DNA from: Obrimoposthia wandeli
Lineage: Eukaryota
Assembly (NCBI GenBank): GCA_977020255.1
Contig: CDROCS010002027.1
Span: 186,001 to 250,000, forward strand
Length of the DNA stretch: 64,000 nucleotides
Reading direction: 5' to 3'
Positions 28,745 through 62,347 of the stretch are shown piece after piece. Under the pieces are notes generated by a model, which made no database searches, was not told the DNA's origin, and saw nothing but the letters and a program-made list of their open reading frames with translations. Made by a program: the position numbers and the translations under genes. The first letter of the stretch is position 1. Each line of letters starts with the position of its first letter.

Positions 28745-28779
28745 ACATTTCTCCTAAAGTGTGTGTATTTGATTAAGTA

Positions 28780-28938
28780 GTGTCCATCCAGAAACGGATG
28801 TCTACTGCGAACGCCTCACTGACACAATCTACTCACTACTAGATATAGTTGTTTGGAACAACCAAACGCCCATATCTAGTAGTACATATCTTGAATCATT
28901 GAGTCGCTCTCGCGACGACCCCGTTTCAGGATGAACAC
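28780..28938 (+). mobile_element. MITE family A, copy 1 (159 bp, 18-bp imperfect TIR, TSD TAAGTA)
   Basis: GTGTCCATCCAGAAACGG...CCGTTTCAGGATGAACAC; TAAGTA at 28774-28779 and 28939-28944. Confidence 0.9.
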
Positions 28939-28994
28939 TAAGTAAATTATAAAGCGTAAACAAACACAATAAAACGAACATAAACATGACACTT

Positions 28995-29013
28995 TGTTCT
29001 ATAATACCGAACA
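28995..29013. promoter_or_regulatory. LysR T-N11-A recognition box
   Basis: TGTTC-tataatacc-GAACA immediately upstream of the LysR start. Confidence 0.55.
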
Positions 29014-29015
29014 TT

Positions 29016-29942
29016 ATGATGAAATATTTACGCCACATGATGGTCTTTAACGCGATAGTAGAATCAGGTTCAATCAGTGCGGCAGCTGAGCAATTGAATA
29101 TTTCTAAATCGGTGTTAAGCCAACAACTACAAACCCTAGAGCAAGTATTGAACGTTGAGCTGCTTAAACGCACTACAAGACGTCAAGTACTCACGCCTGC
29201 GGGGAAACAGTTTTTTGCCCAGTGCCAACAAATTTCCAATATTGGCGAGCAAGCATGGCGCGATGCCCATAACTCTCAAAAATTGGCGATTGGCCGTATA
29301 AACATTAGTGCACCTCACGCCTTAATGGATACTTTAATTGCTCCTGCTATTGGTGCTTTAGTTAGTAAACACCCTAAAATCATTCCACACTTGCATTCGC
29401 AAGACACCCGCGTGCATTTATTAGAAGAGAATATCGATCTTGCCATTCGTATCGGGCAATCAAATGATAGTGAATTCAAACAACAGCGCATTGGTCAGTT
29501 TGCTGATCATTTATGCGTCAGTAAACGTTATTTAAACATTCAAGGCTTGACGGCCCAGCAAGTTCAGCATAACCCCGAACTTACTTGTTCACTTGATTAT
29601 ATTGCTAACAGTTGGCAAGGCAGCGCTATAACACACCCCTTAATCAATAACATTGAAAAGAAGGTTTTGCAGTTTCGCTCAACACGTTTTGCCAACTCTA
29701 TTAATGGTGTACTGGCGCTGGTTAAAGAAGGTGCTGGAATAGGGCTAATTCCACAGATATTACTCGATAAATTATCACTTCAATATCTAGATGACTTGGT
29801 TATTATTACCCAACATTACCCATTAAATACTACGCCTATTTACGCACTACATGCCTTTAGCCAAGCACCGCCACATGTGGTTCAACTGTGCATAAACGCA
29901 ATTAAAAGCAAAATGGCGGCACACTTTGAAAGCGCAATTTAA
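29016..29942 (+). CDS. LysR family regulator (start 29016 or 29019)
   Basis: SISAAAEQLNISKSVLSQQLQTLE..L...LL.RTTR, IDLAIRIG. Confidence 0.92.
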   Translation: MMKYLRHMMVFNAIVESGSISAAAEQLNISKSVLSQQLQTLEQVLNVELLKRTTRRQVLTPAGKQFFAQCQQISNIGEQAWRDAHNSQKLAIGRINISAPHALMDTLIAPAIGALVSKHPKIIPHLHSQDTRVHLLEENIDLAIRIGQSNDSEFKQQRIGQFADHLCVSKRYLNIQGLTAQQVQHNPELTCSLDYIANSWQGSAITHPLINNIEKKVLQFRSTRFANSINGVLALVKEGAGIGLIPQILLDKLSLQYLDDLVIITQHYPLNTTPIYALHAFSQAPPHVVQLCINAIKSKMAAHFESAI

Positions 29943-30385
29943 TGGGCTCATAACATTTAGCGATGCTTCACCTGTACATGAAATATGTTTCAAACGCTCA
30001 AATACTCACCTCTCATAAAAACATCACATTTTCTGAGCAAGGCTGTTTGCTAACACGCTGGTCAAAATAACTGTGTAGTGCTTAAGGGGTTTATTTAACA
30101 TGCATTCCAGATCATTTAAAAACCAATACAATCAATTGATTAGTGACATAACAATTGGAATAAATAATTGATCTATAGCATTCACATTGCACAAAGTCTT
30201 CAGCAGCTAGTGTCTTTAAATTGTTGAATATTTTGTAATCAATTGAATTTTAAATGCTAACTGAGGTATAACTAGAGCAAGCTATGTTAACTTGTTGCTT
30301 ATGCAACATAGAAAGTAGCACATCGAAGCGTTTATTGTATGCACGCTTGATTTAAAATAACTATAAAAATGATAAGAGGTCAACA

Positions 30386-31372
30386 ATGAAAATAATTAGT
30401 AAAGTGGCGCTAACTGGCTTAATTTTGGCAACCACCTATGGTGTTAGTTTTGCGGCCGATATGAAAAAAATAGCTATTTCAACAATTGTTGAAGTTCCCT
30501 CTTTGATGGATGCTAAGCAAGGCGTTTTAAATGCACTCGCTGAGCGCGGCTATGTGGTGGGTAAAAACTTAGAAGTTGAATACCAAAGCGCGAATGGCAG
30601 CATGCCTACCCAGCAACAAATCGCTAGAAAACTGATTGGTGGTGAACCTGATGTTATCGTGCCAATCACCACACCCACTGCTCAATCAATTGTCGCGGCA
30701 ACTAAAAACATTCCGATTGTGTTTACCGCTGTCACTGATCCCATAAAAGCTAAATTGATTAAGCAGTATAAGCAACCTGGCGCCAATGTAACTGGCGTTT
30801 CAGATGCTGCTCCAATCGGCGCTCAGCTCGATTTTTATAAGCGCATTGTGCCTAATCTCAAAAAAATTGGCTTCATCTACAACCCTGGCTTAGATAATGC
30901 TTTAGCCGCTTTAGCTATTATCAAAGAAGAAGGAAAAAAACGCGGTATTAGTGTGGTTGAATCAGCAGCACCCACCACAAACGAAGTAATATTGGCCACC
31001 AAAAAGTTAATCGGCAAGGTCGATGCAGTTTACATTCCTAACGATACTACCGTGGTCGCGGCGCTTGAGGCGATTGTTAAAATTGGCCAAGATGTGGATA
31101 TGCCAATCTTTGCAGGTGATACCGGCGCAGTTAAACGCGGTGTATTAGCAGCTGTCGGTTTAGACTACAACGAAGTAGGCAGAGTAACAGGGGCGATTGT
31201 TGCCGATATATTAGATGGTAAAGATCCCGGAACTATCGATGCTGTGGTAGCTTACGAAGCAGTGTCTAAATTTAAAATTATGGTAAATTTAGAATCGGCT
31301 AAAAATATGGATGTTATTATTCCTGCTGATGTTTTAAAAGAAGCTAACAAAATTATTCCTGTCAAAAAGTAG
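30386..31372 (+). CDS. ABC substrate-binding protein (ABC_sub_bind, Trp/Tyr-type family)
   Basis: Signal peptide, IVEVPSL, TPTAQ, IPIVFTAVTDP, NVTGVSD. Confidence 0.88.
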   Translation: MKIISKVALTGLILATTYGVSFAADMKKIAISTIVEVPSLMDAKQGVLNALAERGYVVGKNLEVEYQSANGSMPTQQQIARKLIGGEPDVIVPITTPTAQSIVAATKNIPIVFTAVTDPIKAKLIKQYKQPGANVTGVSDAAPIGAQLDFYKRIVPNLKKIGFIYNPGLDNALAALAIIKEEGKKRGISVVESAAPTTNEVILATKKLIGKVDAVYIPNDTTVVAALEAIVKIGQDVDMPIFAGDTGAVKRGVLAAVGLDYNEVGRVTGAIVADILDGKDPGTIDAVVAYEAVSKFKIMVNLESAKNMDVIIPADVLKEANKIIPVKK

Positions 31373-31459
31373 CTTTTCAAAGGTATCTTGGCTCGCTTTA
31401 CGACCATCGACCTCTCTCAGTTCAGCACTTAGCAGATAACATGATTAGTTATTTGCTAA

Positions 31460-31613
31460 CATTACTGTCCGGTTAAAAAGTGTAAGCTCTCTAACTCGTT
31501 AATTTATGGCTTTCTAGCATAGTTAATTGGATTTTTTTCAGCCGAATAACACTCGTGGTTAACGTAAAATCAATGAGTTAAAGAACAACAAAAAATTAAA
31601 CCTGACACTAATA
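31460..31613. mobile_element. MITE family B, copy 2 (154 bp, TSD ATTTGCTAA), inverted relative to copy 1
   Basis: CATTACTGTCCGGTTAA...TTAAACCTGACACTAATA; ATTTGCTAA at 31451-31459 and 31614-31622. Confidence 0.85.
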
Positions 31614-31708
31614 ATTTGCTAAGTACTACTGCTGAGTTTGGTAATCATTACTGATTATTCCCTCTAGTTTTATCATTTATGCATATGCCATTAACATAAA
31701 GGAAAGCT

Positions 31709-32617
31709 ATGTCGCTCTATGAAATTTTAGGTACTTTAGAAACAGGATTTATTTTTGCTTTAGTTGCACTGGGTGCTTATTTAACTTTTAAAATAATAGA
31801 TTTTCCAGACTTAACTGTGGAAGGCACCTTCCCGCTAGGCGCCGCTGTGGCGGCAACATTGATTGTTGGCGCTGACTGGAATCCAATTTTAGCTACTTTA
31901 GGTGCCACTGTAATCGGTTTTTTTGCCGGATACCTAACCGCTTACCTCAATGTAAAGTTTAAGATTTTACATATATTAGCGGGGATTTTAGTCGCTATTG
32001 GCTTGTACTCCATTAACTTGCGCATCATGACAGGGCCCAATAAACCTTTGTTAGGCGTTGATACCGTTTTTACCTATTTAGAAGGCTTTGGGATTGCAGG
32101 CTATATCATCAACCCTGTCCTTTTAGGGTTAATAGTCGTCATCATTAAACTGGTGATGGACAAGCTATTATCGACAGGCTGGGGTATATCTATGCGTGCA
32201 GCAGGGGCTAACCCTGCAATGGCCGAAGCGAACAGCGTTAACGTCGGTCAAATGAAATTATTTGGAGTAGGTATTGCCAACGCTTTAACCGCACTTGCTG
32301 GTGCTTTATTTGCACAAGTGTTTGGTGCAGCAGATGCTTATATGGGTATCGGTGTAATTATAGTTGGCCTAGCTTCAGTGATTGTTGGTATGTCTATTTT
32401 GCCTTCTACCACTATATTCTTGGCTACATTAGCCTGTATTGTTGGCGCCATTCTTTACCGGTTAGCCGTGGCAGTTTCATTAAACGCTGACTTTATTGGT
32501 CTTCAAGCATCAGATGTACAACTGGTTACTGCGATACTCGTCACTATTGCACTGATTATTCAACAATCTGGCAATTCAATTTTTAAAAGAAGAAAAAAGG
32601 AGATTAAAGGTGATTGA
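31709..32617 (+). CDS. ABC permease
   Basis: DFPDLTVEGTFPLG, LYSINLRIM, GIGVIIVGLASV. Confidence 0.9.
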   Translation: MSLYEILGTLETGFIFALVALGAYLTFKIIDFPDLTVEGTFPLGAAVAATLIVGADWNPILATLGATVIGFFAGYLTAYLNVKFKILHILAGILVAIGLYSINLRIMTGPNKPLLGVDTVFTYLEGFGIAGYIINPVLLGLIVVIIKLVMDKLLSTGWGISMRAAGANPAMAEANSVNVGQMKLFGVGIANALTALAGALFAQVFGAADAYMGIGVIIVGLASVIVGMSILPSTTIFLATLACIVGAILYRLAVAVSLNADFIGLQASDVQLVTAILVTIALIIQQSGNSIFKRRKKEIKGD

Positions 32618-33404
32618 ATTAAAAGATATTCACGTAACTTTTAATAGTGGTACGCCTTTAGAAACACGCGCACTACGTGGTGTTGATCTGGTTGTTCCTA
32701 AAGGGCAATTCCTCACGGTCATTGGTTCAAACGGTGCCGGTAAGTCAACTTCACTAAATGTAATAGCTGGCCTTGCACCGGTTAGCCAAGGCAAAGTGAT
32801 AGTCGCTGGCGATGATGTTACCCATTGGCCTGTTCATCAACGTGCCAAGTTTTTATCTAGGGTATTTCAAGATCCTAAAATGGGCACTTGTGAAGATTTA
32901 TCCATATTAGAAAACTTTGCTTTAGCGCACGGGCGCACTGCTCATCGCGGCTTTGCAGCAGCAGTTACTAAAGAAATTCGTGAGCAAACAGCGAATCGCC
33001 TGGAAATACTCGGTTTGGGACTTGAAAACAGGTTAGACGATAAAGTGGGTCTCTTATCAGGTGGGCAACGCCAAGCGGTATCACTTTTAATGGCGACAAC
33101 AGGCGACACTAAAGTACTGCTACTAGATGAACACACCGCTGCGTTAGACCCTAAAACTGCAGCTTCTATCTTGCAGCTCTCTAAACAGATAGTGGAGCAA
33201 ATGGGTTTAACCGCCGTAATGGTGACACACTCAATGGCACAAGCGCTGCAAACTGGGGAGCGCACTATAATGTTTCATCGAGGAAAAATAGTCTTTGACG
33301 CATCTGGCGCCCAAAGAAAAGGAATGCAAGTTGAAGACTTACTCGCTTTATTCAAAGAACAGCAAGGGGAAGAACTTGCCGATGACTCTCTGCTGCTAGG
33401 CTAA
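32610..33404 (+). CDS. ABC ATP-binding protein
   Basis: GSNGAGKS, LSGGQRQ, LLLDEHTAALDP. Confidence 0.95.
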   Translation: MIELKDIHVTFNSGTPLETRALRGVDLVVPKGQFLTVIGSNGAGKSTSLNVIAGLAPVSQGKVIVAGDDVTHWPVHQRAKFLSRVFQDPKMGTCEDLSILENFALAHGRTAHRGFAAAVTKEIREQTANRLEILGLGLENRLDDKVGLLSGGQRQAVSLLMATTGDTKVLLLDEHTAALDPKTAASILQLSKQIVEQMGLTAVMVTHSMAQALQTGERTIMFHRGKIVFDASGAQRKGMQVEDLLALFKEQQGEELADDSLLLG

Positions 33405-33681
33405 GGAAGTAGCGAACAGGTCCCAGACGCCCTTGCGTACAGGACTTTTTGTGCTTGAGGCAATAGTTACAGGCGGGCTGGTGGCTCGGCGAAAAACATT
33501 AACAAAGAGCACGAATAATCCTGCGAGCCCCTTAAGGGTGCTTATGTTCTCAAAGAAAGCTAAGCGGTCAACTCCTTTGTCAGAACATTTGTAAAGGACT
33601 GGCCATTCAATGCACGTCCTTGTACGCATTTAACCGCTTAGTTATCCACAGGGAACATCTGGGAACTTATTCGCTACCTCC
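33405..33681. mobile_element. IS5-like non-autonomous element (277 bp, TSD CTAA)
   Basis: Left end GGAAGTAGCGAACAGGTCCCAGA; right end (reverse complement) GGAGGTAGCGAATAAGTTCCCAGA; CTAA at 33401-33404 and 33682-33685; no transposase-length ORF. Confidence 0.8.
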
Positions 33682-33939
33682 CTAAGGTCTTTAATAAAGT
33701 GAATATTACTTTTTTTGATAAACAGGCTTTTTCATTATTTTAAAAAAATCCCAATTTTTCTCCCTATTTCGCATCTCAATAAAGCACTCATAAATAACTC
33801 ACTTATTATGTTGCATATGCAACATCAAACCATTATGCTCTGCATAGACATTGAGCGCTATTTAGCCAATTATCTGTTTACTACACCGGATTATTTTCGT
33901 TTTCAATATAAGATCCAATCATAAAATAAAGGAGTTTAT

Positions 33940-34530
33940 ATGCCACTTATCACCCCCTTAGCAGAAGACACCAACAGTGAAGTTGCCGAGCTAGCAAAAT
34001 TCTTTAACGAGACTTTAGGCTTTTGCCCAAACAGTGTTTTAACCATGCAGCGTCGCCCCGCTATCGCTGCAGCTTTTATTAATCTGAACAAAGCAGTGAT
34101 GGCTAATGAAGGTAGAGTGACTGCTGAACAAAAGCGTCTCATTGGCTATTTGACCAGTGCGAATACTGGTTGTCGTTACTGTGAGGCTCACACGATCTTG
34201 GCTGCTGAGCGCTACGGAGGAAGCGAAGCAAGGCTAGCTAATATTTGGCTGTTTAGAGAAAGTGATTTATACACGCCCGCTGAAAAAGCAGCCTTTGAGC
34301 TCGCCCTTGCCGCCTCTAGCGTGCCAAACGCCGTAGATGAGGAAATCACTCGCCAAATCAATACTTACTGGGATGAGGGCGAAGTGGTAGAAATACTGGG
34401 AGTGATAGCCCTTTTTGGCTACCTCAATCGCTGGAACGACTCAATGGGTACAACCATGGAAAGCGGTGCTATAAACGCAGGTGAACGCCTGTTAGCTGAA
34501 ACACCTTGGAGTCGCGGCAAACATACATAG
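33940..34530 (+). CDS. Carboxymuconolactone decarboxylase/AhpD-like protein
   Basis: GFCPNS, GCRYCEAH, LNRWND. Confidence 0.85.
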   Translation: MPLITPLAEDTNSEVAELAKFFNETLGFCPNSVLTMQRRPAIAAAFINLNKAVMANEGRVTAEQKRLIGYLTSANTGCRYCEAHTILAAERYGGSEARLANIWLFRESDLYTPAEKAAFELALAASSVPNAVDEEITRQINTYWDEGEVVEILGVIALFGYLNRWNDSMGTTMESGAINAGERLLAETPWSRGKHT

Positions 34531-34613
34531 GTTTTCGTTCAAGCTTTATTTTGCAAAGTGCGCTAGGCTCACTTTGCTTTACCTATCAGCTATTAATAGA
34601 TGATGCCGAACGC

Positions 34614-34635
34614 ATAGATAGATAGATAGATAGAT
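34614..34635. repeat. (ATAG)5 tetranucleotide microsatellite
   Basis: ATAGATAGATAGATAGATAGAT, intergenic. Confidence 0.85.
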
Positions 34636-34998
34636 TTATGATCGAGTTCGAGGAATAACTTAAACCTCTTTTTTTAAATAACTAACAGTGCAGTTGCACA
34701 GAAAAATTCACACCCTCAAGAAAAAATCACCTTAAACTTTACAGTTCCTATTATGATTGATTTATCTACTTTTATTGTTCAGTTTACGCAATATTACATG
34801 CTTTCAGTTGCTTCGATGAGTTCAATATATTCGATCAGTCTTTACGAACTATTTGACCAATTTAACTTTAGATAAGGTTTGCAAAAAATCACAGCTTCTT
34901 GAGCATTTATAATGCATAAAAACATTTGTCAGTTTTAAGCTGATTTTAAAAAACAACCATTTCCCTTCCTGCAGCAATACCGGCCACAGGGCTAATTA

Positions 34999-35155
34999 GT
35001 GCTCATCCAGAAACGAATATCTACTGCGAACGCCTCACTAACTCATCTACTCACGACTAGATTTAATTGTTTGGAATAACCAAACGCCCATATCTAGTAG
35101 TACGTATCTTGATCATTGAGACGCTCTCGTGACGACCCCGCTTCAGGATGAGCTC
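34999..35155 (+). mobile_element. MITE family A, copy 2 (157 bp, TSD TAATTA)
   Basis: GTGCTCATCCAGAAACG...GCTTCAGGATGAGCTC; TAATTA at 34993-34998 and 35156-35161. Confidence 0.88.
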
Positions 35156-35390
35156 TAATTAAACGAGCTTTGGCGTGCATTAAAACCCCACCTAGACTTA
35201 ATTATTGTACTATTACTAATGGCTATTATCATTCACCTGCTCGCTATCACCAACTCAATATTATTTGCAGCTATGAAGCGAAGATGAGAACAATACAAAA
35301 ATGTTTTATAAACAAACACAATTAAGCAACCCACAGTAAGCTAATCTAAAACAGCAACACCAGGTACTAAATAAATAAAAGGAACAACAA

Positions 35391-36104
35391 GTGAAAGCAA
35401 GTCTTGAAGTCTGTATTGATAACGTAGCTGGCCTTAAAACCTGTGAGGCAGCTAAGGTAGATCGAATAGAACTGTGCTCTGCACTTGAGTTAGGCGGTTT
35501 AACTCCCAGTGTGGGTTTGATGCAAGCTGCCAGCCAAAGCAATATTGCGGTATATGCAATGATACGTCCAACAACAGGCGCTTTTGCTTATGATAAAGCT
35601 GCTGTTGCCTGTATGACAAAAGATATAGAAGTAGCTAAAGAGCTAGGCCTAGCCGGTGTTGTATTAGGAGCGGCTACACCTAAATTAGAACTCGACTTAG
35701 CCGTGCTCACCGAGCTTTGCAGCGCTACTGAAGGCATGGGTAAAACACTACACCGTGTAATTGATATTATGTATGATCCTTTCAGAGCCATTGACCAAGC
35801 CATCGATTTAGGCTTTGAGCGAATATTAACCTCCGGCGGTCAGCTCGCGGTCATGCAAGGCATAAATCAACTCGCAAAAATGCAGGCATATGCAAAAGAC
35901 CATATTGAGATTATGGCAGGTTCTGGAGTTTCAGCCGAGAATGTCAGCGAACTACTGTTACAAACAAAGATAAAAGCCATACACAGCTCTTGCTCTAGTC
36001 AAGTTGATGTGGATGCTCAAGCAGTAGCGTTTGGATTCGCCAGCCAAAGGTGTAGCCAAACAAGCTTAAAGAAAATTCGTGCCCTGCAGCAATTACTTGT
36101 ATAA
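35391..36104 (+). CDS. cutC: CutC family protein
   Basis: LEVCID, DRIELCSAL..GGLTPS, MIRP, TLHR, RILTSGG. Confidence 0.92.
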   Translation: MKASLEVCIDNVAGLKTCEAAKVDRIELCSALELGGLTPSVGLMQAASQSNIAVYAMIRPTTGAFAYDKAAVACMTKDIEVAKELGLAGVVLGAATPKLELDLAVLTELCSATEGMGKTLHRVIDIMYDPFRAIDQAIDLGFERILTSGGQLAVMQGINQLAKMQAYAKDHIEIMAGSGVSAENVSELLLQTKIKAIHSSCSSQVDVDAQAVAFGFASQRCSQTSLKKIRALQQLLV

Positions 36105-36311
36105 AAATAACGTATATTGTAAGACTATTAATACCAGCTTCTTACCACTCACTCTTAAACACACTACAGATGCCCTTTTCCATTACCCCTTAATTAATTC
36201 TTCGATAATCCTTTATTTATTTAGTTTGTTTTTGCAATGATTGTAGTGTCTAATCTTAGAATAGATATATTTGAGCAAAATAGCCGTACCCCCTAAACCA
36301 ATTATTTAAGG

Positions 36312-38000
36312 ATGAATAATATGGGATTCTTTCGAAATTTATCAATTGGCAATAAAATTGGCGGGATAGTGATTATCCTGATTAGCTTGTTATTGATCAG
36401 CTCAGTTTATGGCTTTATTAAGGTCAGTGGTATTGGCAGCGAAATGAAGACCGTGCAAGCAGAAGACATGCCGCTTATCCAATTAATGTCGGACGTTACG
36501 GTTAAGCAACTCGAAAAAGCAATATTGATCGAGAAAGCAATGCGTATTGCCGGAGTTACTGATTCCAATGAGTCTGTCTCTGAAATACACCAGCAGATAA
36601 AGCAATTAGCCGATCAGATCGATCACGAAATAAAGGAAGGCGAAGAGATCCTACTAATCGCCAAGACTCATTCGTTGTCTGATCAACAACTCACTGAACT
36701 GTTGAATTTGGAGAAATTTCTTTTCTCTATAGAAAAAGAGCATATGCAATATGAGAGCAAAGTTGAACATTTAATGGAGTTATTGGAAAGCGGCGAAAAG
36801 GTAGCAAGTTCGCAAGTACACGACGTGGAAACGGCACAGAAAAAGCTTAACCACCACCTTGAAGAAGCGCTAGTCAACGTCGAATCAATGACCGACCACG
36901 CACTGGAAACCGTTCTACATAACGAAGAGTCTGCTCTGCTAAGTATGATCTTAATAAGCCTGCTTTCCAGTATCACAGGTATTGTTTTGGGTGTTCTTAT
37001 CACCCGAGCCATCACTAAGCCCCTTGCACATGCTGTAGAGACAGCGAATAGACTTGCTGAGGGCGATCTTACCGTTGAAGTCAATGTACAATCCAGCGAC
37101 GAGACAGGTCAACTGCTACTTGCTATGCGTAAACTGACAGAAAATTTACGTAAAATAATCACTCAAGTAGCAACTTCAACGGAGCAATTAACTGGCGCAA
37201 CGGTTGAAATGACGGCGGTAACAAAACAGACAGCTGACAATCTGGAAGCTCAAAAAAATGATCTAAGCCAGGCATCTGTGGCCATTAACCAGATGTCTGC
37301 TACGGTACAAGAAGTAGCACAAAGTGCTGCACTTGCTGAAAAATCAGCTCGACGGGCCGATACGCAAGCGAGCCACGGAGGTTCTGTGGTCAATCAAGTC
37401 AGCGATTCTATCAATACCCTGGCAACAGAAATTGAAGACACTCAGGCTGTTATCAACCGGCTCGATAACGAAACCGATAATGTCGACTCTATTCTTGAGG
37501 TGATTACATCCATCGCGGAGCAAACAAATTTGTTAGCTCTGAATGCTGCTATTGAAGCGGCGCGGGCCGGAGAGCAAGGTCGCGGTTTTTCCGTGGTAGC
37601 AGATGAGGTTCGTACACTTGCCAGCCGTACACAAATGTCTATTTCTGAAACCCAGCAGATTACCGGACGTCTGAAAAGCGAGACGAACACTTCCGTTCAG
37701 GCGATGAAAAATGGCCATGAAAAAACGAATTTCACTGTTGAGCTATCGAAACAAGCCGGGCAAGCACTAATGGAAATATCTCAAGCCGTAACCAGCATCA
37801 ATGAGATGAACATACAAATAGCGAGTGCGGCTGAGCAACAAAGCGTAGTGACTGAGCAAACCAATGTTTCTATCAACAGAATTAATCAAGCAGCGATAGA
37901 GAACTCTGCCGGGGCCCAGCAACTAGCTACCGCAACAGAGGAAATCGCTCAGTTATCTGAAAACCTTAAGCAGCTTGTCGGGTATTTTAAGGTCGCATAA
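36312..38000 (+). CDS. Methyl-accepting chemotaxis protein (TM-4HB-TM-HAMP-MA)
   Basis: [37 protein letters not shown]. Confidence 0.95.
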
Positions 38001-38127
38001 AACGCTTAAAGGCCAGAGTAAATACTCATAAATTTACTATGAAAGCCTAAAGCGTTTATCAAATTGTAAAATGTTCGGTGTTGGCCAATTTCAGCCATCG
38101 GATAAAATATTCCAAAAAAGACGGAAA
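37947..38127 (+). repeat. Direct repeat copy 1: MCP 3' end plus ~125 bp of downstream flank
   Basis: Homologous to 44032-44212; the non-coding part has about 8 differences in ~116 nt. Confidence 0.85.
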
Positions 38128-38173
38128 TTGGCACAACGCGGACATACCAACGCCAACCACAGCAGCGTAGTTA

Positions 38174-38332
38174 GTGCTCATCCTGAAACGGGGTCGTCGC
38201 GAGAGCGTTTCAAGCACTCAAGATACGTACTTCTAGATATAGGCGTTTGGTTATTCCAAATAACTAGATCTTGTAGTATGTAGATTGAGTTAGTGAGGCG
38301 TTCGCAGTAGGCATCCGTTTCTGGATGGGCAC
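38174..38332 (-). mobile_element. MITE family A, copy 3 (159 bp, TSD TAGTTA)
   Basis: Reverse orientation relative to copies 1-2; TAGTTA at 38168-38173 and 38333-38338. Confidence 0.9.
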
Positions 38333-38338
38333 TAGTTA

Positions 38339-38497
38339 GTGTTCATCCTGAAACAGGGTCGTCGCGAGAGCGACTCAATGATTCAAGATATGTACTACTA
38401 GATATGGGCGTTTGGTTATTCCAAATAACTAGATCTTGTAGTGAGTAGATTGTGTTAGTGAGGCGTTCGCAGTAGGCATCCGTTTCAGGATGAACAC
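38339..38497 (-). mobile_element. MITE family A, copy 4 (159 bp), in tandem with copy 3
   Basis: Shares TAGTTA 38333-38338 with copy 3; TAGTTA again at 38498-38503. Confidence 0.9.
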
Positions 38498-38526
38498 TAG
38501 TTAGCTTAGCGGTTTTTGTTAAGCTT

Positions 38527-38943
38527 CTAACTTCCCATTCCTGGCGGTAGAATGTCAAATTTTGGCACATCGTTAGGGAAGGTTGCCCATGATGGTGCTG
38601 AAGATGCGTAGATTGACATTTTAGGAGTGAACTTATTATTTTTTAATGAAGTTGCTGACACGGAGTAAAAATTACCCGCTGTTACCTCTGCGCACAAAGC
38701 AGTGCTACAAGTGCCACAGAACTGATAATTTACCGCATTACCTGAACTGCCAGCACGCGTATATGATGAAGGTGTACCTTTTGTAAATTTAAAATTATCT
38801 TTTGACACCCAAAGCCCAAACCATTTGTCTGAGCTAGTGAGCGCTTGACACTCCTTGCAATAGCAAAAAATCGAATTTATTGGGTCGTTATCAAAGTAAA
38901 ACTCAATGTCGCCGCAGCGACAACTTCCAATATGTCTTTCCAT
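38527..38943 (-). CDS. GFA family (glutathione-dependent formaldehyde-activating) Zn protein; ATG at 38943 with GGAGA RBS
   Basis: GSCRCG, CYCKECQ, FCGTCS. Confidence 0.88.
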   Translation of the reverse strand: MERHIGSCRCGDIEFYFDNDPINSIFCYCKECQALTSSDKWFGLWVSKDNFKFTKGTPSSYTRAGSSGNAVNYQFCGTCSTALCAEVTAGNFYSVSATSLKNNKFTPKMSIYASSAPSWATFPNDVPKFDILPPGMGS

Positions 38944-39037
38944 GTTATCTCCGATCTGGTTGATGTCCAACGACGATTTCGTAAAATTATTCATATTTAA
39001 TTTCGTTTCCAAAGATGGGACTTCATCTTAGAGTAGA

Positions 39038-39067
39038 TTTTATATATGATAAAGAACATATATAAAA
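39038..39067. promoter_or_regulatory. Probable TetR operator
   Basis: Perfect 11-bp inverted repeat TTTTATATATG-N8-CATATATAAAA between divergent GFA and TetR genes. Confidence 0.65.
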
Positions 39068-39082
39068 AGAAGGCTCAGCCCT

Positions 39083-39664
39083 ATGCCATATACAAAGACG
39101 CACAAAAGCATAACCCGGGAGAAAATTCTTGATAGCTCCTTCAGACTATTTGCAATAAAAGGTTTTGAAGGCGTTACTATCGATGATTTGATGAATAACT
39201 GTGGGCTTACTCGTGGCGGATTTTATGCGCATTTTACGAATAAAGCAGAACTTTACCGTGAGGCATTAAAATTTAGAGCCAGCAGCACTAAACTTGCCAG
39301 CCTTAAGCCAGAGGGTACATCTAATAAAGAGTGGTTGTCTTTGTTGCTAAATAAATACCTAAGCTTGGAGCATGTGAAAGGAGAGCGCTCTTTGTCTTGT
39401 CCGTTAGCGTTCTTGGCCACTGACATCAATATGCAGGATAAAGCAATAAAAACAGCTTATACCGACGTTTACTATGGCATGAATACAGCAATTATGGAGT
39501 ATGCGAATAGCTATACCGACTGTGACGAACAAGATATTTTATCAGTAACCGCAATGATGATAGGCGCTGTCGCTATAGCTAGAACTCTTCAGAATCAAGA
39601 TTCGATTGAGAGTTTACTAGCAGCGTGCAGGCGAGAAGCAGGTGTAAAGTTGGGTGGAATATAA
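39083..39664 (+). CDS. TetR family regulator
   Basis: REKIL...F...GFEGVTIDDLM...GLTRGGFYAHF..K. Confidence 0.92.
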   Translation: MPYTKTHKSITREKILDSSFRLFAIKGFEGVTIDDLMNNCGLTRGGFYAHFTNKAELYREALKFRASSTKLASLKPEGTSNKEWLSLLLNKYLSLEHVKGERSLSCPLAFLATDINMQDKAIKTAYTDVYYGMNTAIMEYANSYTDCDEQDILSVTAMMIGAVAIARTLQNQDSIESLLAACRREAGVKLGGI

Positions 39665-40272
39665 CAGCTTTATTGCGCACCTCTCATTTATCTGAAAGTG
39701 ATAGTCAGAAAACGTGTTAACTTTTAAGTTGTTTTTACATTGCAAACGGTAGTTTTCGAGACTCCTCATTTTTCCCGAACTATTCCCTCCGCTATCTATC
39801 CGCGAGAGCAGTTTAACTAACTGATTTTAAAAGGAATCGAGAATATTACTTTGTGGCAAAGTGCGCCACGATCGTATAATAACTATCTAACAATATGGAA
39901 ATCATTGATGCACTTTATAAAAATAAAAAAATAGATTTTTGCTATTCACATAAATAAAACATACAAAGAATGAATGTTTTGGTGAGTCATTCAAAGACTT
40001 TTGTATTCATATAACTCAGGACCTCTCCTTAACTTCATGCTCACACTGAGAATACTTGTATTAATCGCCTTTGTATTAAATTCAAGAAAACCCGCGGCCA
40101 CGGTGCTATAGCAACTCCTTCATTTACCCATCACATTTCCTTTAAACCCTTGCCCGACAATCATCTTCGATATTTAAGAGTCAGATATTGAGACTCAAAT
40201 CCTATTTAAAGTATGCGCTGTACTAGAACACTAATTATTACAATAAATGAAGCTATTACTTTATCTCTGGGT

Positions 40273-40715: not shown

Positions 40716-41360
40716 ATGTCTACTCACACACATTTTAAACGCACTGTTATCGGTTCAGTGGGAATATTTACGTCTGCATTTTGTTTAGCGAATTCAGATT
40801 CTAATCAAACTTCAGTCCAACACGATGCACACCAACATGGTCAAATTGTTCTCAACGTTGTACAAGAAGCGCAGAATCTACAAATAGAGTTAGAGGCCCC
40901 AGGTGCCGATGTTGTTGGGTTTGAAACACTTAATGGCGATGAACAGCAAAAACAACTACTCGCTGAGGCAATAAAGACACTCAATCAATCTACAAAACTA
41001 TTTGCCTTAAGCAGTGCTGCTAATTGCCAATTACAAACATCAAGTGTTTCACATAATTTTGAGCAACATATAGATGAAGCTCATGATGAACATGAAGAGC
41101 ATGAAGAACATGAAGAGCATGAAGAGCATGAAGAGCATGAAGAGCATGAAGAGCATGAAGAGCATGAAGAGTATTCTGAACACGGTAGCTTTAGTGCGCA
41201 ATACCTTTTTCAATGCACTAACATTGAAAAACTGAAGAGTATAAAGACTCAATGGTTTAACCTTTTCTCAGCGAGCGAATCCATCAAGGTTCAGCAACTT
41301 ACTGATAAAGGTCAAAGTATCAATCTTTTAGATCGCAACAACCCTGAAATAAAATTTTAA
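40716..41360 (+). CDS. zrgA: Zinc-binding periplasmic protein, DUF2796/ZrgA type
   Basis: HDAHQHG, ELEAPGADVVGFE, His/Glu repeat, YLFQC. Confidence 0.85.
   Translation: MSTHTHFKRTVIGSVGIFTSAFCLANSDSNQTSVQHDAHQHGQIVLNVVQEAQNLQIELEAPGADVVGFETLNGDEQQKQLLAEAIKTLNQSTKLFALSSAANCQLQTSSVSHNFEQHIDEAHDEHEEHEEHEEHEEHEEHEEHEEHEEHEEYSEHGSFSAQYLFQCTNIEKLKSIKTQWFNLFSASESIKVQQLTDKGQSINLLDRNNPEIKF
41082..41171 (+). repeat. In-frame 9-bp tandem repeat (CATGAAGAG)x10 encoding HDE(HEE)9
   Basis: 10 units, 8 of them identical CATGAAGAG. Confidence 0.95.
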
Positions 41361-43345: not shown

Positions 43346-43352
43346 GACTTAT

Positions 43353-44031: not shown

Positions 44032-44212
44032 GCTGATTTACTGATACCTTAAACAGCTTTTCGGACATTTTAAAATCGCTTAAAACACTTAAAATCCAGA
44101 GTAAATACTCATAAATCTACTATGCTAAGCCTAAAACGTTTATCTAATTGTAAGAATGTTCGGTATTGGCCAATTTCAGCCATCGGTTAAAATATTCCAA
44201 AAAAGACGGAAA
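44032..44212 (+). pseudogene. Decayed copy of the MCP 3' end (…LKQLFGHFKIA*) plus conserved flank; direct repeat copy 2
   Basis: cttaaacagcttttcggacattttaaaatcgcttaa vs cttaagcagcttgtcgggtattttaaggtcgcataa at the real MCP end; 1-nt deletions upstream. Confidence 0.75.
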
Positions 44213-54905: not shown

Positions 54906-54933
54906 GAATATGCCCTTATTATTCTATTCGTTC

Positions 54934-56007: not shown

Positions 56008-56136
56008 ATTATAGCGCCAGACTAGTACAAAAATTAAACCTTAGCTGGATAAACTAAGTGCCTTTGTAATATCCATTTACTCAGTAAGTTAAACAGTCAC
56101 CTAAGTCAGATAGTAACTTAAGATAGGTATGAAACG

Positions 56137-56164
56137 AATATGCGAGGCAGTAGCCTCGCATATT
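56137..56164. terminator. 12-bp hairpin after the TRAP SBP gene
   Basis: AATATGCGAGGC-agta-GCCTCGCATATT. Confidence 0.6.
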
Positions 56165-56176
56165 AAACAGCGTTTT

Positions 56177-57271
56177 TTATAGATCAAGTACACGGTTACG
56201 TTGGCGTACGTAAGCTTGATCAGATAGTTTAGCCCATCCACCAACAGTAGTACGTGAAGCAACGAAGCTTTCGTGGATACGATTAGCTAGATCACTATGT
56301 GATTTAACTGTTTCAAATACTTCATCAGCCGCTTCGCCGAATGCATCATAAATGTCATCATTGAATTCGCGAAGCTTAACGCCTTGCTCATTCACTAACT
56401 TCTCTAAGAACTGACCGTTCTTAGCATTGTATTCAGCCATCATTACATCATTTTCCATAGATGATGCAGCTTCGATCATTAACTGATCAGCTTTAGATAG
56501 CCCTTTCCACCATTCATTATTCATGCCGATTGCAAGCATTGCGCCTGGCTCATGCATACCTGGGAAGTAGTAGTACTTAGCAGCTTCATAGAATTTCATG
56601 ATGCTGTCATTCCAAGGACCAACCCACTCAGTTGCATCAATAGCACCTGACACTAAGTTTTCATAAATCTGGCCACCAGGAAGTGATACTGGAGATCCAC
56701 CTAGTTTAGCTAATACGTCACCACCAAGACCTGGCATACGCATTTTCAAACCTTTAAAGTCATCAACAGAGTTGATTTCTTTACGGAACCAACCGCCCAT
56801 TTGCACACCAGTATTACCACACATAAGGCCTTTAAGACCATATTCTGCAGATAACTCGTCCCACAATTGCTGCCCGCCACCAAAGCGAATCCAAGCATTC
56901 ATTTCAGTGTAAGTTAGTCCGAAAGGTACTGATGTAAAATATGCGAAACCAGGGTGCTTACCTTTCCAGTAATATTCTGCCGCATGGTACATGTGTGCGT
57001 TACCTGAAGCGACTTCATCAAAAGAGTCAAATGCTTTAACTCTCTCATTTGCTGCAAAATAATTAACCTGGATTCGTCCATCACTCATATCTGACAAGCG
57101 CTGCGCAAAACGTTGTGCACCCGTACCTAGACCTGGGAAATCTCTACCCCAAGTAGCTACCATGTTAATTTCCATACGCTCTTTAGCAATGGCTGGTGCT
57201 GAAATAGCTGTCGCAGCAGCAACACCACCAAGACCTACTAAACCAGTTTTTAAAAGATCACGTCTTTTCAT
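56177..57271 (-). CDS. dctP: TRAP substrate-binding protein (TakP-like, twin-arginine signal)
   Basis: MKRRDLLK, GNTGVQMGGWF, GLKMRMPGLGG, IDATEWVGP. Confidence 0.93.
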   Translation of the reverse strand: MKRRDLLKTGLVGLGGVAAATAISAPAIAKERMEINMVATWGRDFPGLGTGAQRFAQRLSDMSDGRIQVNYFAANERVKAFDSFDEVASGNAHMYHAAEYYWKGKHPGFAYFTSVPFGLTYTEMNAWIRFGGGQQLWDELSAEYGLKGLMCGNTGVQMGGWFRKEINSVDDFKGLKMRMPGLGGDVLAKLGGSPVSLPGGQIYENLVSGAIDATEWVGPWNDSIMKFYEAAKYYYFPGMHEPGAMLAIGMNNEWWKGLSKADQLMIEAASSMENDVMMAEYNAKNGQFLEKLVNEQGVKLREFNDDIYDAFGEAADEVFETVKSHSDLANRIHESFVASRTTVGGWAKLSDQAYVRQRNRVLDL

Positions 57272-57990
57272 GAAGACAAACTCCTAATTATTATTGTTTA
57301 CCGAAATCGGTATTTTTATCACTGACTGTAATATATCTGTAAAAATATATTACTGCCCTATAACTGCATCAGTACATCAGAATTATCATACAGAGTAAAT
57401 TAGTTTTTTAAATACACTCCCCAGTGTTTTTTATAACTAATCGACAAAAAACCATAGAAACCACTTCTAAAAACCTAAGAAATAGTCTTAGTTTAATTCT
57501 CGTAGAGTGATTGTTACTTTTTCACCAAAATAATTCACCCCTTTATATCTACTACTTTAGTCGTAGACAGAGCAAGATAACCTAAGTATCTGAATTAATT
57601 GTACCTCATGTTATCAACTTACCAAGTAATAACAACAGCTCAAGAAAATCTTCACTAGCTTCACCACCATTAGGTCATTTATTTTTTATTAAAACTAATG
57701 CTTTTTAAAGTTGTTTAAATTCGATATGCTTTTGTGGGTTCTTAATGTGATATTAATTAGATCTCTATTAAAAGCTTTTCAAAGTTGTTAATTAATACAA
57801 AAGACAATAGCTTCAAGTTAAGCTAAAACATGTGGCTTCGAAAAACAAAGCGATTGCTAATTCGTTCGTTTTCGAGATAGACATATTGTGGTTATCAAAG
57901 AGGCAAAATCATGACAGGGCCTATATCGACACCTATTCATCAATCGAATTTATCGCAAATAATGGACCTACAAAGGGTGCATTACATTGA

Positions 57991-58380
57991 GGTTTTAAGA
58001 TAGGCGCGGTAGATTATATTACTAAGCCATTACACCCTGTTATTGTAAGCATTGGATTGAGTATTCATTTGAGCTTTGAACGATCAAAGAGTTCTCTTAG
58101 AGAACATCTCCAAACAGCGCATTTGTGAGTGACACAATTCGTACCAGGAAATTATTGACTACATCGATCTCGCTCTGGATTTAAAGATATTAAAACTGGT
58201 ATACGCACTATTTAGAAGAGCTATTATGCAAAATTTATCACCCGAGCTTCTAGCACAGATGCTGACCGGATTGAGCTAATTTATCAAGTCTTGCAAGCAC
58301 TCTGTTGCAAAGAAGATATAACCGATTCTGTATTGCTTAATCTGGTAAGCGAGATGAAGAGCGGTGGAACACCTTTGTGA
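57991..58380 (+). pseudogene. Relic REC plus HD-GYP (RpfG-like) gene
   Basis: 57991-58128 reads GFKIGAVDYITKPLHPVIV...IHL; 58177-58380 reads FKDIKTGIRTI*KSYYAK...IELIYQ...DITDSVLL; stops and frame changes present. Confidence 0.65.
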
Positions 58381-58666
58381 ACGGTTGCCAATAATATGTC
58401 AAAAGCAGAATGGTTTGGGCTACTCTAAATCTGAATAGCAAGTAACTCTGATAACAGCCAGAGTTGTTGCCATCACTGATTTTTAAGCTCTACGATCAGC
58501 TCCCTTACCAAATGCTTGACTAGTTTCTGATAGAGTTATCTTCAAAAAGATAGTACTAATTATCACATTGATTCTGTATTGGTGAATCCTTTTATCGACG
58601 ATTCACCTCAATTACTCGTTATTAGGCAAACAGTAGCAAAATTTATGAACCTCCTTTATGCACTTT

Positions 58667-60190
58667 TTAAAAAGGTGCTATAAAACTTGAACTCTGCCTA
58701 GCTAATACTTGTTTGTTATCGACTGATTTAACCACAAAACTGATACTGTTGTTAGAAGATGTTACAGCTTCATTGTTTATGCGCACTCTTACCATCAATG
58801 TATCCACTTCGCCTCTGGGTACATATATCGTTGGATCACTACTAATAACAAAGTGCTTATCAGCTTCTAGCTGCAGAGTGAATGAATTAGTTAAGGCTGC
58901 TTTATTGTTAATTTTTACGGTATATATATTTTCAATAGCTGAGTCTACTTGCTGATATAAGTTACCACTTCTATCGCGTATAACATCTATGCTCAACACA
59001 TCCCTTGTATAGACAGCATACATAAACATACTACAAATAATAACACTCGACATAGTAAGTAAAAGTGTTTTTGGTTTAAGCCAAGCACTGCCTACAGTCT
59101 GTGCATTCTCTTGAGAGCTAAATTTAATTAACCCTGGGGCTAAGCCCATTTTTTCCATAACATTGTCACAAGCATCAATACACAAACCACAATCAATACA
59201 GGGATACTGCAAACCATCGCGAATATCTATATCTACAACGCAAACCTGTACACACAAAGAACAATCGACACAATCACCTTGTGCACTATTCACTAGCTCT
59301 TCTTTTTTACGCTTCCCGCGATTTTCCCCACGTTGCGCATCATAAGTAACCACTAAAGTATCTTTAGTATACATCACCGCTTGCAGCCTGGCGTAAGGGC
59401 ACATGTGTAAACACACCTTCTCTCTTAACCAACCTGCATTTAGGTAGGTACCCAGCACAAAGATTAGCAACCAAAAAGCACCTAAAGAATTCATTTGCAA
59501 ATTTACTGTATCTGCAACTAGTGGCTTAATTTCATAAAAATAGCCAACAAAGGTATAAGCTGTCACTAAGGACACAAGCACCCATAGAATATGCTTTAAT
59601 GCTTTACGATATAATTTTTTCCAACTCCACGGTTGCTTATCTAACTTAATACGCTGGTTACGGTCACCTTCACACTTCTCTTCTATCCAAATAAAGAAGA
59701 AAGTCCAAACCGTTTGCGGACAAGTAAAGCCGCACCATACTCTGCCAATAACCACTGTAGCTGCGATCAACAAAAAAACAGCTAACACTAACAGCCATAT
59801 AAGAAAAACTGCGTCTTGCGGCCAAAAGGTTAAACTGAATATATGAAATTTTTGTTGCTCAAGATCGAACAACACCGCAGGTCTGCCTGAAACTTCAAAC
59901 CAGGGAAGTAACATGAAAATGCCGACTAACATGAAACTCAAATACTTTCGTAACTTTTGAAAAAAACCATCCACACTTTTAGTGTAAATTTTACCTTGAT
60001 AAATATCTGTGCCGAACAGGGAGATTGATTTTGGAAATTTGAATAAACGATCAACGAAACGGCTTTTATAAGGAATATTACTTTCAATATAAGCTTGATC
60101 ATCACTTAACATATTTATCAGTGGAATTTTATCAGACATTTTTTGCATTCGCGCATTAGAAGGAGTAGATGCTATTTTAATCTGATTCAC
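58667..60190 (-). CDS. ccoG: Second CcoG/FixG-family 4Fe-4S membrane protein
   Basis: GRVWCGFTCPQ, CLHMCPYARLQ, CVDCSLCVQVC, CIDCGLCIDAC. Confidence 0.9.
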   Translation of the reverse strand: MNQIKIASTPSNARMQKMSDKIPLINMLSDDQAYIESNIPYKSRFVDRLFKFPKSISLFGTDIYQGKIYTKSVDGFFQKLRKYLSFMLVGIFMLLPWFEVSGRPAVLFDLEQQKFHIFSLTFWPQDAVFLIWLLVLAVFLLIAATVVIGRVWCGFTCPQTVWTFFFIWIEEKCEGDRNQRIKLDKQPWSWKKLYRKALKHILWVLVSLVTAYTFVGYFYEIKPLVADTVNLQMNSLGAFWLLIFVLGTYLNAGWLREKVCLHMCPYARLQAVMYTKDTLVVTYDAQRGENRGKRKKEELVNSAQGDCVDCSLCVQVCVVDIDIRDGLQYPCIDCGLCIDACDNVMEKMGLAPGLIKFSSQENAQTVGSAWLKPKTLLLTMSSVIICSMFMYAVYTRDVLSIDVIRDRSGNLYQQVDSAIENIYTVKINNKAALTNSFTLQLEADKHFVISSDPTIYVPRGEVDTLMVRVRINNEAVTSSNNSISFVVKSVDNKQVLARQSSSFIAPF

Positions 60191-60198
60191 TCATAGGT

Positions 60199-60236
60199 AC
60201 AGATACACAAAAAACTATATTTTAGTGCACAGATAC
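60199..60236. promoter_or_regulatory. ACAGATAC direct repeats 30 bp apart; candidate MocR operator
   Basis: ACAGATAC at 60199-60206 and 60229-60236 in the short divergent intergenic region. Confidence 0.55.
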
Positions 60237-60288
60237 GTAATAATACCGCCTGTCCCTATCTTTTCTAACCAATGTGTACCTACTTTTT

Positions 60289-61689
60289 ATGAGCCAATAT
60301 TTATACACACAACTTGCACAACTATTGCGTAATAAAATAAGTAACGGACAGCTGCACGTTTTTAGTAAATTACCCTCAATTAGAGAAATGTGTCGTTTAC
60401 ATAATGTTTCAAAATCAACCGTACTCACTGCGTACGCCCACTTAGAAGCTGAAGGATTAATTGAAGCGAGGGCTAAATCTGGATACTACGTTACGAAGCC
60501 ACCAAACCCTTTAAAAAAACCAGATATCAGTCAACCTGACTCAGCACCTAGACTTATCTCAAGTACCCAAGTGATTGTCGACATGATGCGCAGAGGCGCT
60601 GCTTTTGATTTATTACCTAATAGTAAAACAGACCCTTATAATGAACAATTAAGACACGCTTTAACAAAAACATTACGTCACCAAAACAGTAGTGAACAAC
60701 TATATTATGACCAACCCCAAGGAAACAAATTTTTACGCGCACAACTAGCCCACTGTATCAATCATGGAGCTGGGCAAGTAAGCCAAGATGAGGTTATTAT
60801 TACTAACGGTTGTCAACATTCACTGCTGTTAGCTTTGATGGCATCGACAGAACCAAATGACGTAGTTGCCATTGAATCCCCTGGATTTTACGGCGCATTG
60901 CAATTATTAGAAGCACTGGGGCGTAAAGTTTTAGAAATACCCAGCTCTGCTGATCAAGGCATTAGCTTGGACGCACTCAAACTAGCCGCCAATCATTGGG
61001 ATATAAAAGCCTTAATCGTTTCTCCTAGCTTTGCGACTCCAACCGGTTCGTGTATGTCTGAGCAACAAAAAGAGCAATTATTAGCCTTAGCTGAAATGCA
61101 AAATTTTGTCATTATTGAAGATGATATATACGCAGAACTTCACTATGACATACAAAGACCAAGAACAATTTATTCTTATGACACCCGAGGTTTTGTAATC
61201 CTTTGTTCTTCTCTTTCAAAGATACTCTCGCGAGACTTACGCATTGGCTGGATCGTATCATCTAAATACCACCAGCAACTTCTGGCATTAAAAATAGCCA
61301 CTTCTATGTCCAACAGTGTCAGCCAGCAAGAAGGTGTTGCGCTTTTTATTGCCAAAGGAGGTCTAGATAAACATTTAAAGTTGCGCAGACTGCTGCTCAG
61401 AAAACAAAAAGAGCAGTTACAAACGCTTATGATTAATCACTTACCCCTGGCGGTAAGTGCCAGCCAGCCTAAAGGTGGCATGGTAATCTGGTTGGAACTG
61501 GATTCCAAAATCAATACGTTAACTTTGTACCACCAAGCTCGAGAAATAGGCTTAACAATTACCCCCGGCAGCTTATTCAGCGCGCAAGATACTTATCAGC
61601 ACTACCTTCGACTTAGCTTTGCGCACCCTTGGACAGATACGCGACAACAAGCTTTTAAACAACTTGCTAAGCTAATTCACCAATATTGA
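60289..61689 (+). CDS. MocR/GntR PLP-dependent transcriptional regulator
   Basis: wHTH KLPSIR...VSKSTV..AY..LE..G, aminotransferase IEDDIY, SLSK..LRIGW. Confidence 0.93.
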   Translation: MSQYLYTQLAQLLRNKISNGQLHVFSKLPSIREMCRLHNVSKSTVLTAYAHLEAEGLIEARAKSGYYVTKPPNPLKKPDISQPDSAPRLISSTQVIVDMMRRGAAFDLLPNSKTDPYNEQLRHALTKTLRHQNSSEQLYYDQPQGNKFLRAQLAHCINHGAGQVSQDEVIITNGCQHSLLLALMASTEPNDVVAIESPGFYGALQLLEALGRKVLEIPSSADQGISLDALKLAANHWDIKALIVSPSFATPTGSCMSEQQKEQLLALAEMQNFVIIEDDIYAELHYDIQRPRTIYSYDTRGFVILCSSLSKILSRDLRIGWIVSSKYHQQLLALKIATSMSNSVSQQEGVALFIAKGGLDKHLKLRRLLLRKQKEQLQTLMINHLPLAVSASQPKGGMVIWLELDSKINTLTLYHQAREIGLTITPGSLFSAQDTYQHYLRLSFAHPWTDTRQQAFKQLAKLIHQY

Positions 61690-61754
61690 TAATCCGCGAG
61701 TGCCTCGCAAGCCCCTTCATTAATTTTTTTATTTTTAAGCTAAAAAATTACTTA

Positions 61755-61913
61755 GTTCCCATCCTGAAATGAGCTTGTCGCAAGAGCGTCTCAATGATCC
61801 AAGATACGTACTACTAGATATGGGCGTTTGGTTGTTCCAAACATCTAGATCTAGTAGCGAGTAGATTGAGTTAGTGAGGCGTTCTCAGTAGACATCCGTT
61901 TCTGGACGGGCAC
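61755..61913 (-). mobile_element. MITE family A, copy 5 (159 bp, TSD TACTTA)
   Basis: TACTTA at 61749-61754 and 61914-61919. Confidence 0.88.
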
Positions 61914-62347
61914 TACTTAGCAAACAGTTCTTTTTCTATATCTCTAAACCCTTTAAATTCAAGCGCATTGCCTGAAGGATCAGAAAAAAACATAGTACCT
62001 TGCTCTCCTACTTCACCAGCAAAACGCACATAAGGTTCTATAATAAAGTCATCGACAAACTCTTGAGCGCGTTTAGCAAAAACTTCCCAATCATCAAATT
62101 GCAACACCACTCCAAAGTGCGGTACAGGCACAGCATGCCCATCGACGCCATTGCTGATGGAAGCTATTTTACCTTCTTTGCCTAGAGATGGATTTAAATG
62201 CGTTACAAATTGATGTCCGAACATATCAAAATCAATCCATTGATCACTACTACGTCCTTCACTAAAGCCCATTTTTTTACCATAAAACTCTCTAGCTTCT
62301 TCAATATCTCTGACTTGTACTGCTAAGTGAAAAGGTGTTAATTTCAT
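61913..62347 (-). CDS. VOC/glyoxalase family protein
   Basis: [36 protein letters not shown]. Confidence 0.9.

Follow-up and report, generated by a model that had tools for sequence, protein, structure and literature searches.

Which transposase moves a short, geneless hairpin repeat in a bacterial contig of a eukaryote assembly, and at what target is the repeat inserted? The question is raised by a stretch of 64,000 nucleotides (positions 186001-250000 of contig C2027, the whole of which is called the window) from the 1.35-Gb assembly of Obrimoposthia wandeli (G000; 6,912 contigs), a single contig of which carries five copies of a miniature inverted-repeat transposable element (MITE), designated family A. 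Family A is most probably a non-autonomous MITE on which the DDE transposase of an ISDol1-group insertion sequence (ISNCY, related to IS5) acts in trans. Insertion sequences of 1.67 kb found elsewhere end in the same 16-nt terminal inverted repeat, insertion of family A duplicates a whole hexamer, and close relatives differ in whether a given site carries a copy. As a class of element it is ordinary, a known type of mobile DNA with no new mobility mechanism; the partner assignment, a refined target, an array mechanism and a conserved fold are added here, and a repeat that is abundant in a marine gammaproteobacterium but carries no annotation is now assigned to a defined transposase group.

The five copies are 157–159 bp long, have no coding capacity, form one hairpin overall and align end to end (BLAST; 86–100% identity to c3). 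Copy c1 (159 bp, minus strand; 28774..28944, element 28780-28938) is flanked by TAAGTA repeats at 28774-28779 and 28939-28944; c2 (157 bp, minus strand; 34993..35161, element 34999-35155) by TAATTA direct repeats; c3 (159 bp, plus strand; 38168..38338, element 38174-38332) by TAGTTA repeats, and forms the first half of a dimer, head to tail, with c4 (159 bp, plus strand; 38333..38503, element 38339-38497), the middle TAGTTA (38333-38338) being common to both; c5 (159 bp, plus strand; 61749..61919, element 61755-61913), the most diverged of the five, is flanked by TACTTA direct repeats. Copies c1 and c2 are oriented opposite to c3, c4 and c5. The terminal inverted repeat GTGYYCATCCWGAAAC (16 nt) was found at both element ends, together with the inner inverted repeat ACTACTAGATAT/ATATCTAGTAGT and a central GTTTGG/CCAAAC hairpin. 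An earlier reading of the window from its letters (the original prediction) had placed five copies at these positions, and full-length alignment by BLAST confirmed them; the internal inverted repeat, the central hairpin and the fold-back of the whole element agreed with the sequence and with folding z-scores, hexamer direct repeats were present at five of five copies, and a transposase was indeed absent from the window. The terminal inverted repeat, predicted as imperfect and 18 bp long, is present, but its length as typed is 16 nt.

The ends were traced to full-length elements by an end-motif scan of one genome per species, from which at least 120 stretches were obtained. The matches listed were mostly from Desulfobacterota and marine Gammaproteobacteria, and most of them were MITE-sized (at least 47 pairs 140–176 bp apart, flanked by 6-bp TANNTA or 7-bp TANNNTA repeats); also among the matches listed were four elements of 1.67–1.68 kb, each with one open reading frame (ORF) of about 445–465 aa, in Vreelandella rituensis (L044), a Cellvibrionales metagenome-assembled genome (MAG; L100), an Agarilytica MAG (L157) and a Desulfobacterales MAG (L113). 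The transposases of the full-length elements have DDE_Tnp_1 and DUF772 domains; with the NCBIfam model NF033593 ('ISNCY family transposase', a PGAP model; cut-off 325 bits) the proteins of these four gave 416–431 bits, the IS5 and IS1182 models being far lower. At least five elements with family-A ends encode NF033593 proteins (overall range 416–516 bits), and the same ends were found on a Marinobacter plasmid copy (61% identity) and on Sinorhizobium/Rhizobium plasmid copies (45%). An ISNCY transposase of Sinorhizobium meliloti shares 45% identity with the L100 transposase (E 2e-129) and lies in tandem between copies of the 'ISNCY-like element ISRm17 family transposase' (WP_010970069.1); the latter is ISRm17, a member of the ISDol1 group of ISNCY (PMC10194956). 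The duplications at full-length elements read TAGCTA/TAGCTA and TATCTA/TATCTA (6 bp) and TAGTCTA/TAGTCTA (7 bp), that is, the MITE target at 6 or 7 bp, and the 16/16 end match together with a TA(N2-3)TA duplication recurred in eight independent full-length elements from three phyla. Because its ends belong to ISDol1-group (ISNCY) insertion sequences with the same 6–7-bp duplications, family A is not an orphan. The original prediction had suggested a search for a full insertion sequence with the same terminal bases; such elements were found in other bacteria, but not in the O. wandeli assembly. MITEs with these ends are spread across Desulfobacterota, Gammaproteobacteria and other phyla, and the end sequence is nearly invariant while the transposases diverge to 35–45% identity.

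For the target, 55 family-A copies were tabulated with their flanks, and readable ends were obtained for 51. The flanking hexamers were identical left and right in 39 of the 51 and differed by one base in 9; the central NN was equal on both sides in 44 (shuffling: mean 10.4, maximum 22 in 10,000 shuffles). The hexamer is TA-NN-TA, with the following NN in the left flank: GT 17, AC 11, AT 8, GC 6, CT 4, AA 3. NN is mostly RY, position −7 is Y in 40/51 and position +7 is R in 44/51; the family-wide target is the palindrome Y-TA-RY-TA-R. The original prediction had proposed a flank logo from all copies; its TAANTA target fits only its own five copies, NN being variable in the family at large; its MITE with a 6-bp TA-NN-TA duplication stood, both by the within-copy NN match and by empty sites with a single hexamer. 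Non-canonical hexamers were likewise duplicated whole, namely GAGTTA (L027, in the O. wandeli assembly), GAACTA (L067) and TAATTT (L079), the latter two in other genomes, and a true 6-bp duplication is therefore favoured over a 2-bp NN duplication with TA-ended termini. ISfinder gives 6–7-bp repeats for the ISDol1 group; the duplication length stated here is from our own measurements.

Empty sites were found in relatives. The window CcoN is 99% identical to CcoN of the MAG 'Oceanospirillaceae bacterium 9NakV-11' (G676), a close relative that had been located via a match of the MITE body to L114. In G676 the c1 site is empty, with a gapless alignment to left flank, one hexamer and right flank; the hexamer is GGAACA (window: TAAGTA-element-TAAGTA). 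The c3/c4 site of G676 is also empty and gapless, reading ...GCAGTG TAGTAA GCTTAGCGG... as against ...GCAGCG TAGTTA (dimer) GCTTAGCGG... in the window, and in G687 the same site is empty with the hexamer CCATAA, again without gaps. At c5 no element is present in G676; homology restarts at TAATTA (a half-site), followed by the conserved right flank. Weaker support came from a homeolog in the same assembly (G000:C5463, 75% identical), which is without c1, and, for c2, from a contig of the public run X2, in which 297 bases are skipped with 135 other letters between; the net loss is 162 bases vs 163 expected. The full empty sites (c1 in G676; c3/c4 in G676 and G687) have exactly the length for one hexamer. 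Since they are 4 bp longer than a 163-bp element with a 2-bp TA duplication predicts, that reading, which the original prediction had offered as equivalent, is refuted. The single TANNTA anticipated at empty sites was thus found in length everywhere, but only partly in sequence: TAGTAA is closest (one base off TANNTA), TAATTA is a half-site, and GGAACA and CCATAA are more diverged. Two candidates for empty sites were discarded, C3321 as a duplicated segment and the repeat at 44046-44212 as stopping before the insertion point. No homeolog was found in the O. wandeli assembly for c2, and for c5 one at 68% identity; a metagenome scan with the LysR protein and a search of the genus of G676 with the c2 flank gave no match. 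To the right of its empty c3/c4 site, at a distance of 12 bp, G676 has a 48-bp insertion (L228 1451-1498, G676:C8); it is not in the window and resembles sequence at G000:C3321.

Several results weigh against the assignment to the ISDol1 group or against details of the target. A search of the O. wandeli assembly with the L100 protein and NF033593 gave 44.7 bits at best and nothing above the cut-off, and an NF033593 transposase above the cut-off was not found in the closest relative, G676, either; the partnership is therefore inferred from common ends and target rather than from a pair residing in one genome. Only about 17–20 nt at each end of the MITE are homologous to the full-length elements. 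A TANNTA hexamer is lacking from two of the three full empty sites (GGAACA, CCATAA), although, their flanks being only 84–94% identical, these sites need not show the pre-insertion sequence. On sequence alone a 6-bp duplication is not formally separable from a 2-bp NN duplication with TA-ended termini, the wholly duplicated GAGTTA, GAACTA and TAATTT being the sole argument for 6 bp there. The invariant TA at both flank edges and the architecture, with about 160 bp of intergenic DNA folding into a long hairpin, would also suit a MITE of IS630/Tc1-mariner type (ERIC-type or cyanobacterial Nezha-type), with duplication of TA only and a length of 163 bp including NNTA and TANN. That origin is scarcely credible: the NN of the supposed termini is a direct and not an inverted repeat and varies between copies, the empty sites are gapless with the full 6 bp and not 2 bp, and the transposase of the elements that share these ends is an IS5-like DDE_Tnp_1 protein under NF033593, not an IS630 one. 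The original prediction had already set the target apart from the plain TA of IS630-mobilised elements, and the 6-bp empty sites and the non-IS630 partner agree with it. Mobilisation by a different, unseen transposase of the genus (e.g., another IS5-family element), with the ISDol1-type elements as look-alikes only, would fit the failure to find an NF033593 transposase in the O. wandeli assembly and the presence there of several other IS5/IS1182-like genes with weak NF033593 matches. It is very unlikely in view of the 16/16 ends, combined with the unusual TA(N2-3)TA duplication in the eight elements, and of decayed NF033593 genes in the MITE-carrying sister species G679 and G689; moreover, four solo-end sites inspected in the O. 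wandeli assembly had ordinary genes only and no transposase gene of any kind. An end pair 1.55 kb apart on C5358 was considered as the parent and rejected, being a MITE interrupted by an IS110-family element. Within the genus of G676 (12 species) the MITE was found in G676 (at least 27 matches), G682 (35), G679 (14) and few others, and NF033593-type genes only as pieces or with stop codons: two pieces in G679, the larger of 318.9 bits, and fragments in G686, G689 and G685. Because broken genes of this type occur in four sister species, the lineage must once have had the autonomous element. An intact transposase was not found and the copies are about 5% off their consensus, for which reasons family A is probably dormant in this assembly; the copies look like the remains of a past burst.

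The remaining alternative concerns the hairpin. One copy folded as DNA at −35.7 kcal/mol (z −8.4) and as RNA at −79.4 (z −10.7). In an alignment of 41 copies, four of them from two other species groups, 96.4% of the cells were paired vs 35–41% with the partners slid; compensatory change on both sides was found in 19 of 52 pairs, and 120 cells were changed on both sides vs 35.6 in shuffles. The double changes affect at least 10 pairs at once and amount to few events, because most of them separate the two subfamilies described below. The central 45 nt is more conserved than the arms. From these data we infer that the fold-back hairpin is under constraint; it may serve as RNA or help the 159-bp element to bring its ends together, and transposition itself may be what the constraint acts on. 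One strand folded better as RNA in 51/51 copies, by 5–38 kcal/mol (mean 22.6), since the arms differ by G∙U pairs. This strand preference, the compensatory changes that keep the hairpin between subfamilies 78% identical, and the conservation of the centre beyond that of the arms would be expected if the hairpin, besides its mobility, had been recruited for a strand-specific RNA role (terminator, mRNA stabiliser or protein-binding site). Such a role is unlikely: orientation relative to genes is unbiased (of the copies in co-directional pairs, 7 have the orientation of the genes and 10 the reverse; 10 spacers are convergent and 9 divergent), the asymmetry was possibly inherited from one founder, and no Rfam family was matched anywhere in the window. 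An RNA function is not claimed, because of the unbiased orientation relative to neighbouring genes.

With mobilisation by an ISDol1-group transposase as the preferred reading, insertion may be pictured as follows. The transposase would bind the 16-nt ends and attack the palindrome Y-TA-RY-TA-R, which resembles two abutting YTAR half-sites, and the target cuts would be staggered by 6 bp. As the element starts with G and ends with C, both duplicated hexamers would again become perfect Y-TARYTA-R, so that each insertion would rebuild two consensus targets; new copies could then land beside old ones and build arrays with one common hexamer, which would explain the tandem dimer of c3 and c4. These two copies are joined by one common TAGTTA, and either c4 is inserted into the duplicated target copy of c3 or c3 into that of c4. 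A second dimer in the O. wandeli assembly (G000:C4529, L175) has the common hexamer TAACTA; common-hexamer junctions of MITEs or full elements were found in L041, L053, L080, L137, L142 (7 bp) and L154, and common-target junctions also on Marinobacter, Sinorhizobium and Rhizobium plasmids. The window contains 37 Y-TARYTA-R sites in 64 kb, near the shuffle level, or about 2,900 when scaled to 5 Mb; 180 sites beside 90 elements would be about 6% of all targets, in agreement with 2 dimers among about 55 copies. A simple explanation is thereby offered for the tandem arrays of the ISDol1-type group of insertion sequences. On S. meliloti plasmid pHRC017 (L211, 160871-165546) three ISRm17-type insertion sequences were observed head to tail with 1,670-bp spacing, the units being joined by single TAGTCTA and TAGACTA heptamers; this array corresponds, at full length, to the MITE dimer. 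Should an ISDol1-type element enter the genome, the probably dormant family A could be mobilised again. A wider proposal is put forward only tentatively, and is possible rather than probable: the target of the ISDol1 group as a whole would be two YTAR half-sites with 0 or 1 bp between them and cuts 6–7 bp apart, the G...C ends would rebuild two targets and so give arrays by design, and the MITE hairpin would have a function beyond transposition. In the literature no description was found of ISDol1-group MITEs, of their end sequence or of the composite target, and the mentions of ISDol1 that were found give no details on ends or targets.

Family-A repeats are present far beyond chance. BLAST gave 41 matches in the O. 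wandeli assembly (84–100% identity), and a search for the end motif TAGTGYYCATCCWGAAAC, one mismatch being allowed, gave 180 matches vs 4 for a reversed-pattern control; a few one-mismatch end matches fell on very large contigs and had no MITE body there. In total about 70–90 elements or fragments are spread over at least 16 bacterial contigs, so that the search for copy number suggested in the original prediction showed a multi-copy, dispersed repeat. The main subfamily (27 aligned copies) has a mean identity of 94.7% to its own consensus; the consensus of the diverged subfamily (10 aligned copies) is 78% identical to the main consensus. One family-A copy (L031 2094-3475, G000:C5358:9853-11234) has an IS110-family element (Transposase_20, PF02371; ends ATGTGGACTCC...GGAGTCCA) inside its central hairpin, and in a Psychromonadaceae MAG a similar insert with GGACTCC/GGAGTCC ends was found (L122 3483-5082) inside a MITE whose terminal repeats are the same, which points to MITEs as targets of the IS110 lineage. 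A 38-bp 'ends-only' mini element (L032 1003-1040, G000:C1004:6847-6884) consists of two 16-nt terminal repeats around GACTCC, is flanked by TAATTA and TAAATA, and represents an extreme case of internal deletion or else a footprint of repair. For annotation, the assignment draws attention to repeats at which assemblies break and which occupy spacers with promoters and terminators.

The window is a bacterial contig within a eukaryote assembly, as follows from its dense bacterial gene content (cbb3 oxidase, chemotaxis receptors, GGDEF proteins, LysR/TetR/MocR regulators); the GC content (guanine plus cytosine) is 34–44% in 2-kb windows. The host of family A is a marine gammaproteobacterium. A sample of 251 genomes from the order to which the Psychromonadaceae MAG G002 belongs (Enterobacterales) gave 79% as the best CcoN identity and no close relative, nor was one found in an Alteromonadaceae sample searched with CutC or in an Enterobacterales sample searched with the MITE; contigs related to the window are present in a public 'ice metagenome' run. 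The neighbours of c1 are a small minus-strand gene and, at 28986-29942, a gene for a LysR-type regulator; c2 separates an AhpD-like gene from cutC, and c5 separates genes for a MocR-like regulator and a diguanylate cyclase. At least four further dispersed repeat families occur in the window: one of about 285 bp (33400-33686), one of about 150 bp (31460-31613; elsewhere often a few hundred bases from family-A copies), one of about 250 bp (37963-38127 and 44046-44212), and the family B of the original prediction (413-583). A 1.27-kb segment at 38514-39781, with a 161-aa ORF and a TetR regulator gene, is duplicated on a separate contig (G000:C3321:62589-63866, 92% identity), the homology beginning 10 bp past the last TAGTTA of the c3-c4 dimer. 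In the ORF 40716-41360, next to the zinc-related locus of the window, a run of 9-bp repeats (41056-41192) codes for HEE repeats rich in His and Glu.

Among known systems, ERIC-type, Correia-type and IS630-mobilised MITEs are likewise short intergenic hairpin repeats with terminal inverted repeats and many copies per genome; they duplicate TA only, whereas family A duplicates a whole hexamer and its partner transposase is of another family. Elements and MITEs of the IS5 family have 4-bp YTAR/CTAG or 3-bp TNA targets. The IS5 family resembles the present system in its related DDE_Tnp_1/DUF772 transposase (NF033578, 107–127 bits, below its cut-off), and the TA-centred palindromic target of family A reads like two YTAR half-sites; it differs in the duplication (6–7 bp for the family-A type vs 3–4 bp) and in the models, the transposases falling under NF033593 and not under those of IS5. 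The closest likeness is to the ISDol1 group (e.g., ISRm17 and the ISRsp17 family, Sinorhizobium; NF033593), the 16-nt terminal repeat of which is identical or near-identical to that of family A: GTGCCCATCCAGAAAC in the gamma/delta elements and GTGCCC(A/G)TCCATAAAC in the rhizobial ones. Both have a TA(N2-3)TA duplication of 6–7 bp and form arrays with one common target copy; unlike the 1.67-kb ISDol1-type elements, family A is 159 bp long and geneless, has a hairpin interior, and holds only the ends in common with them.

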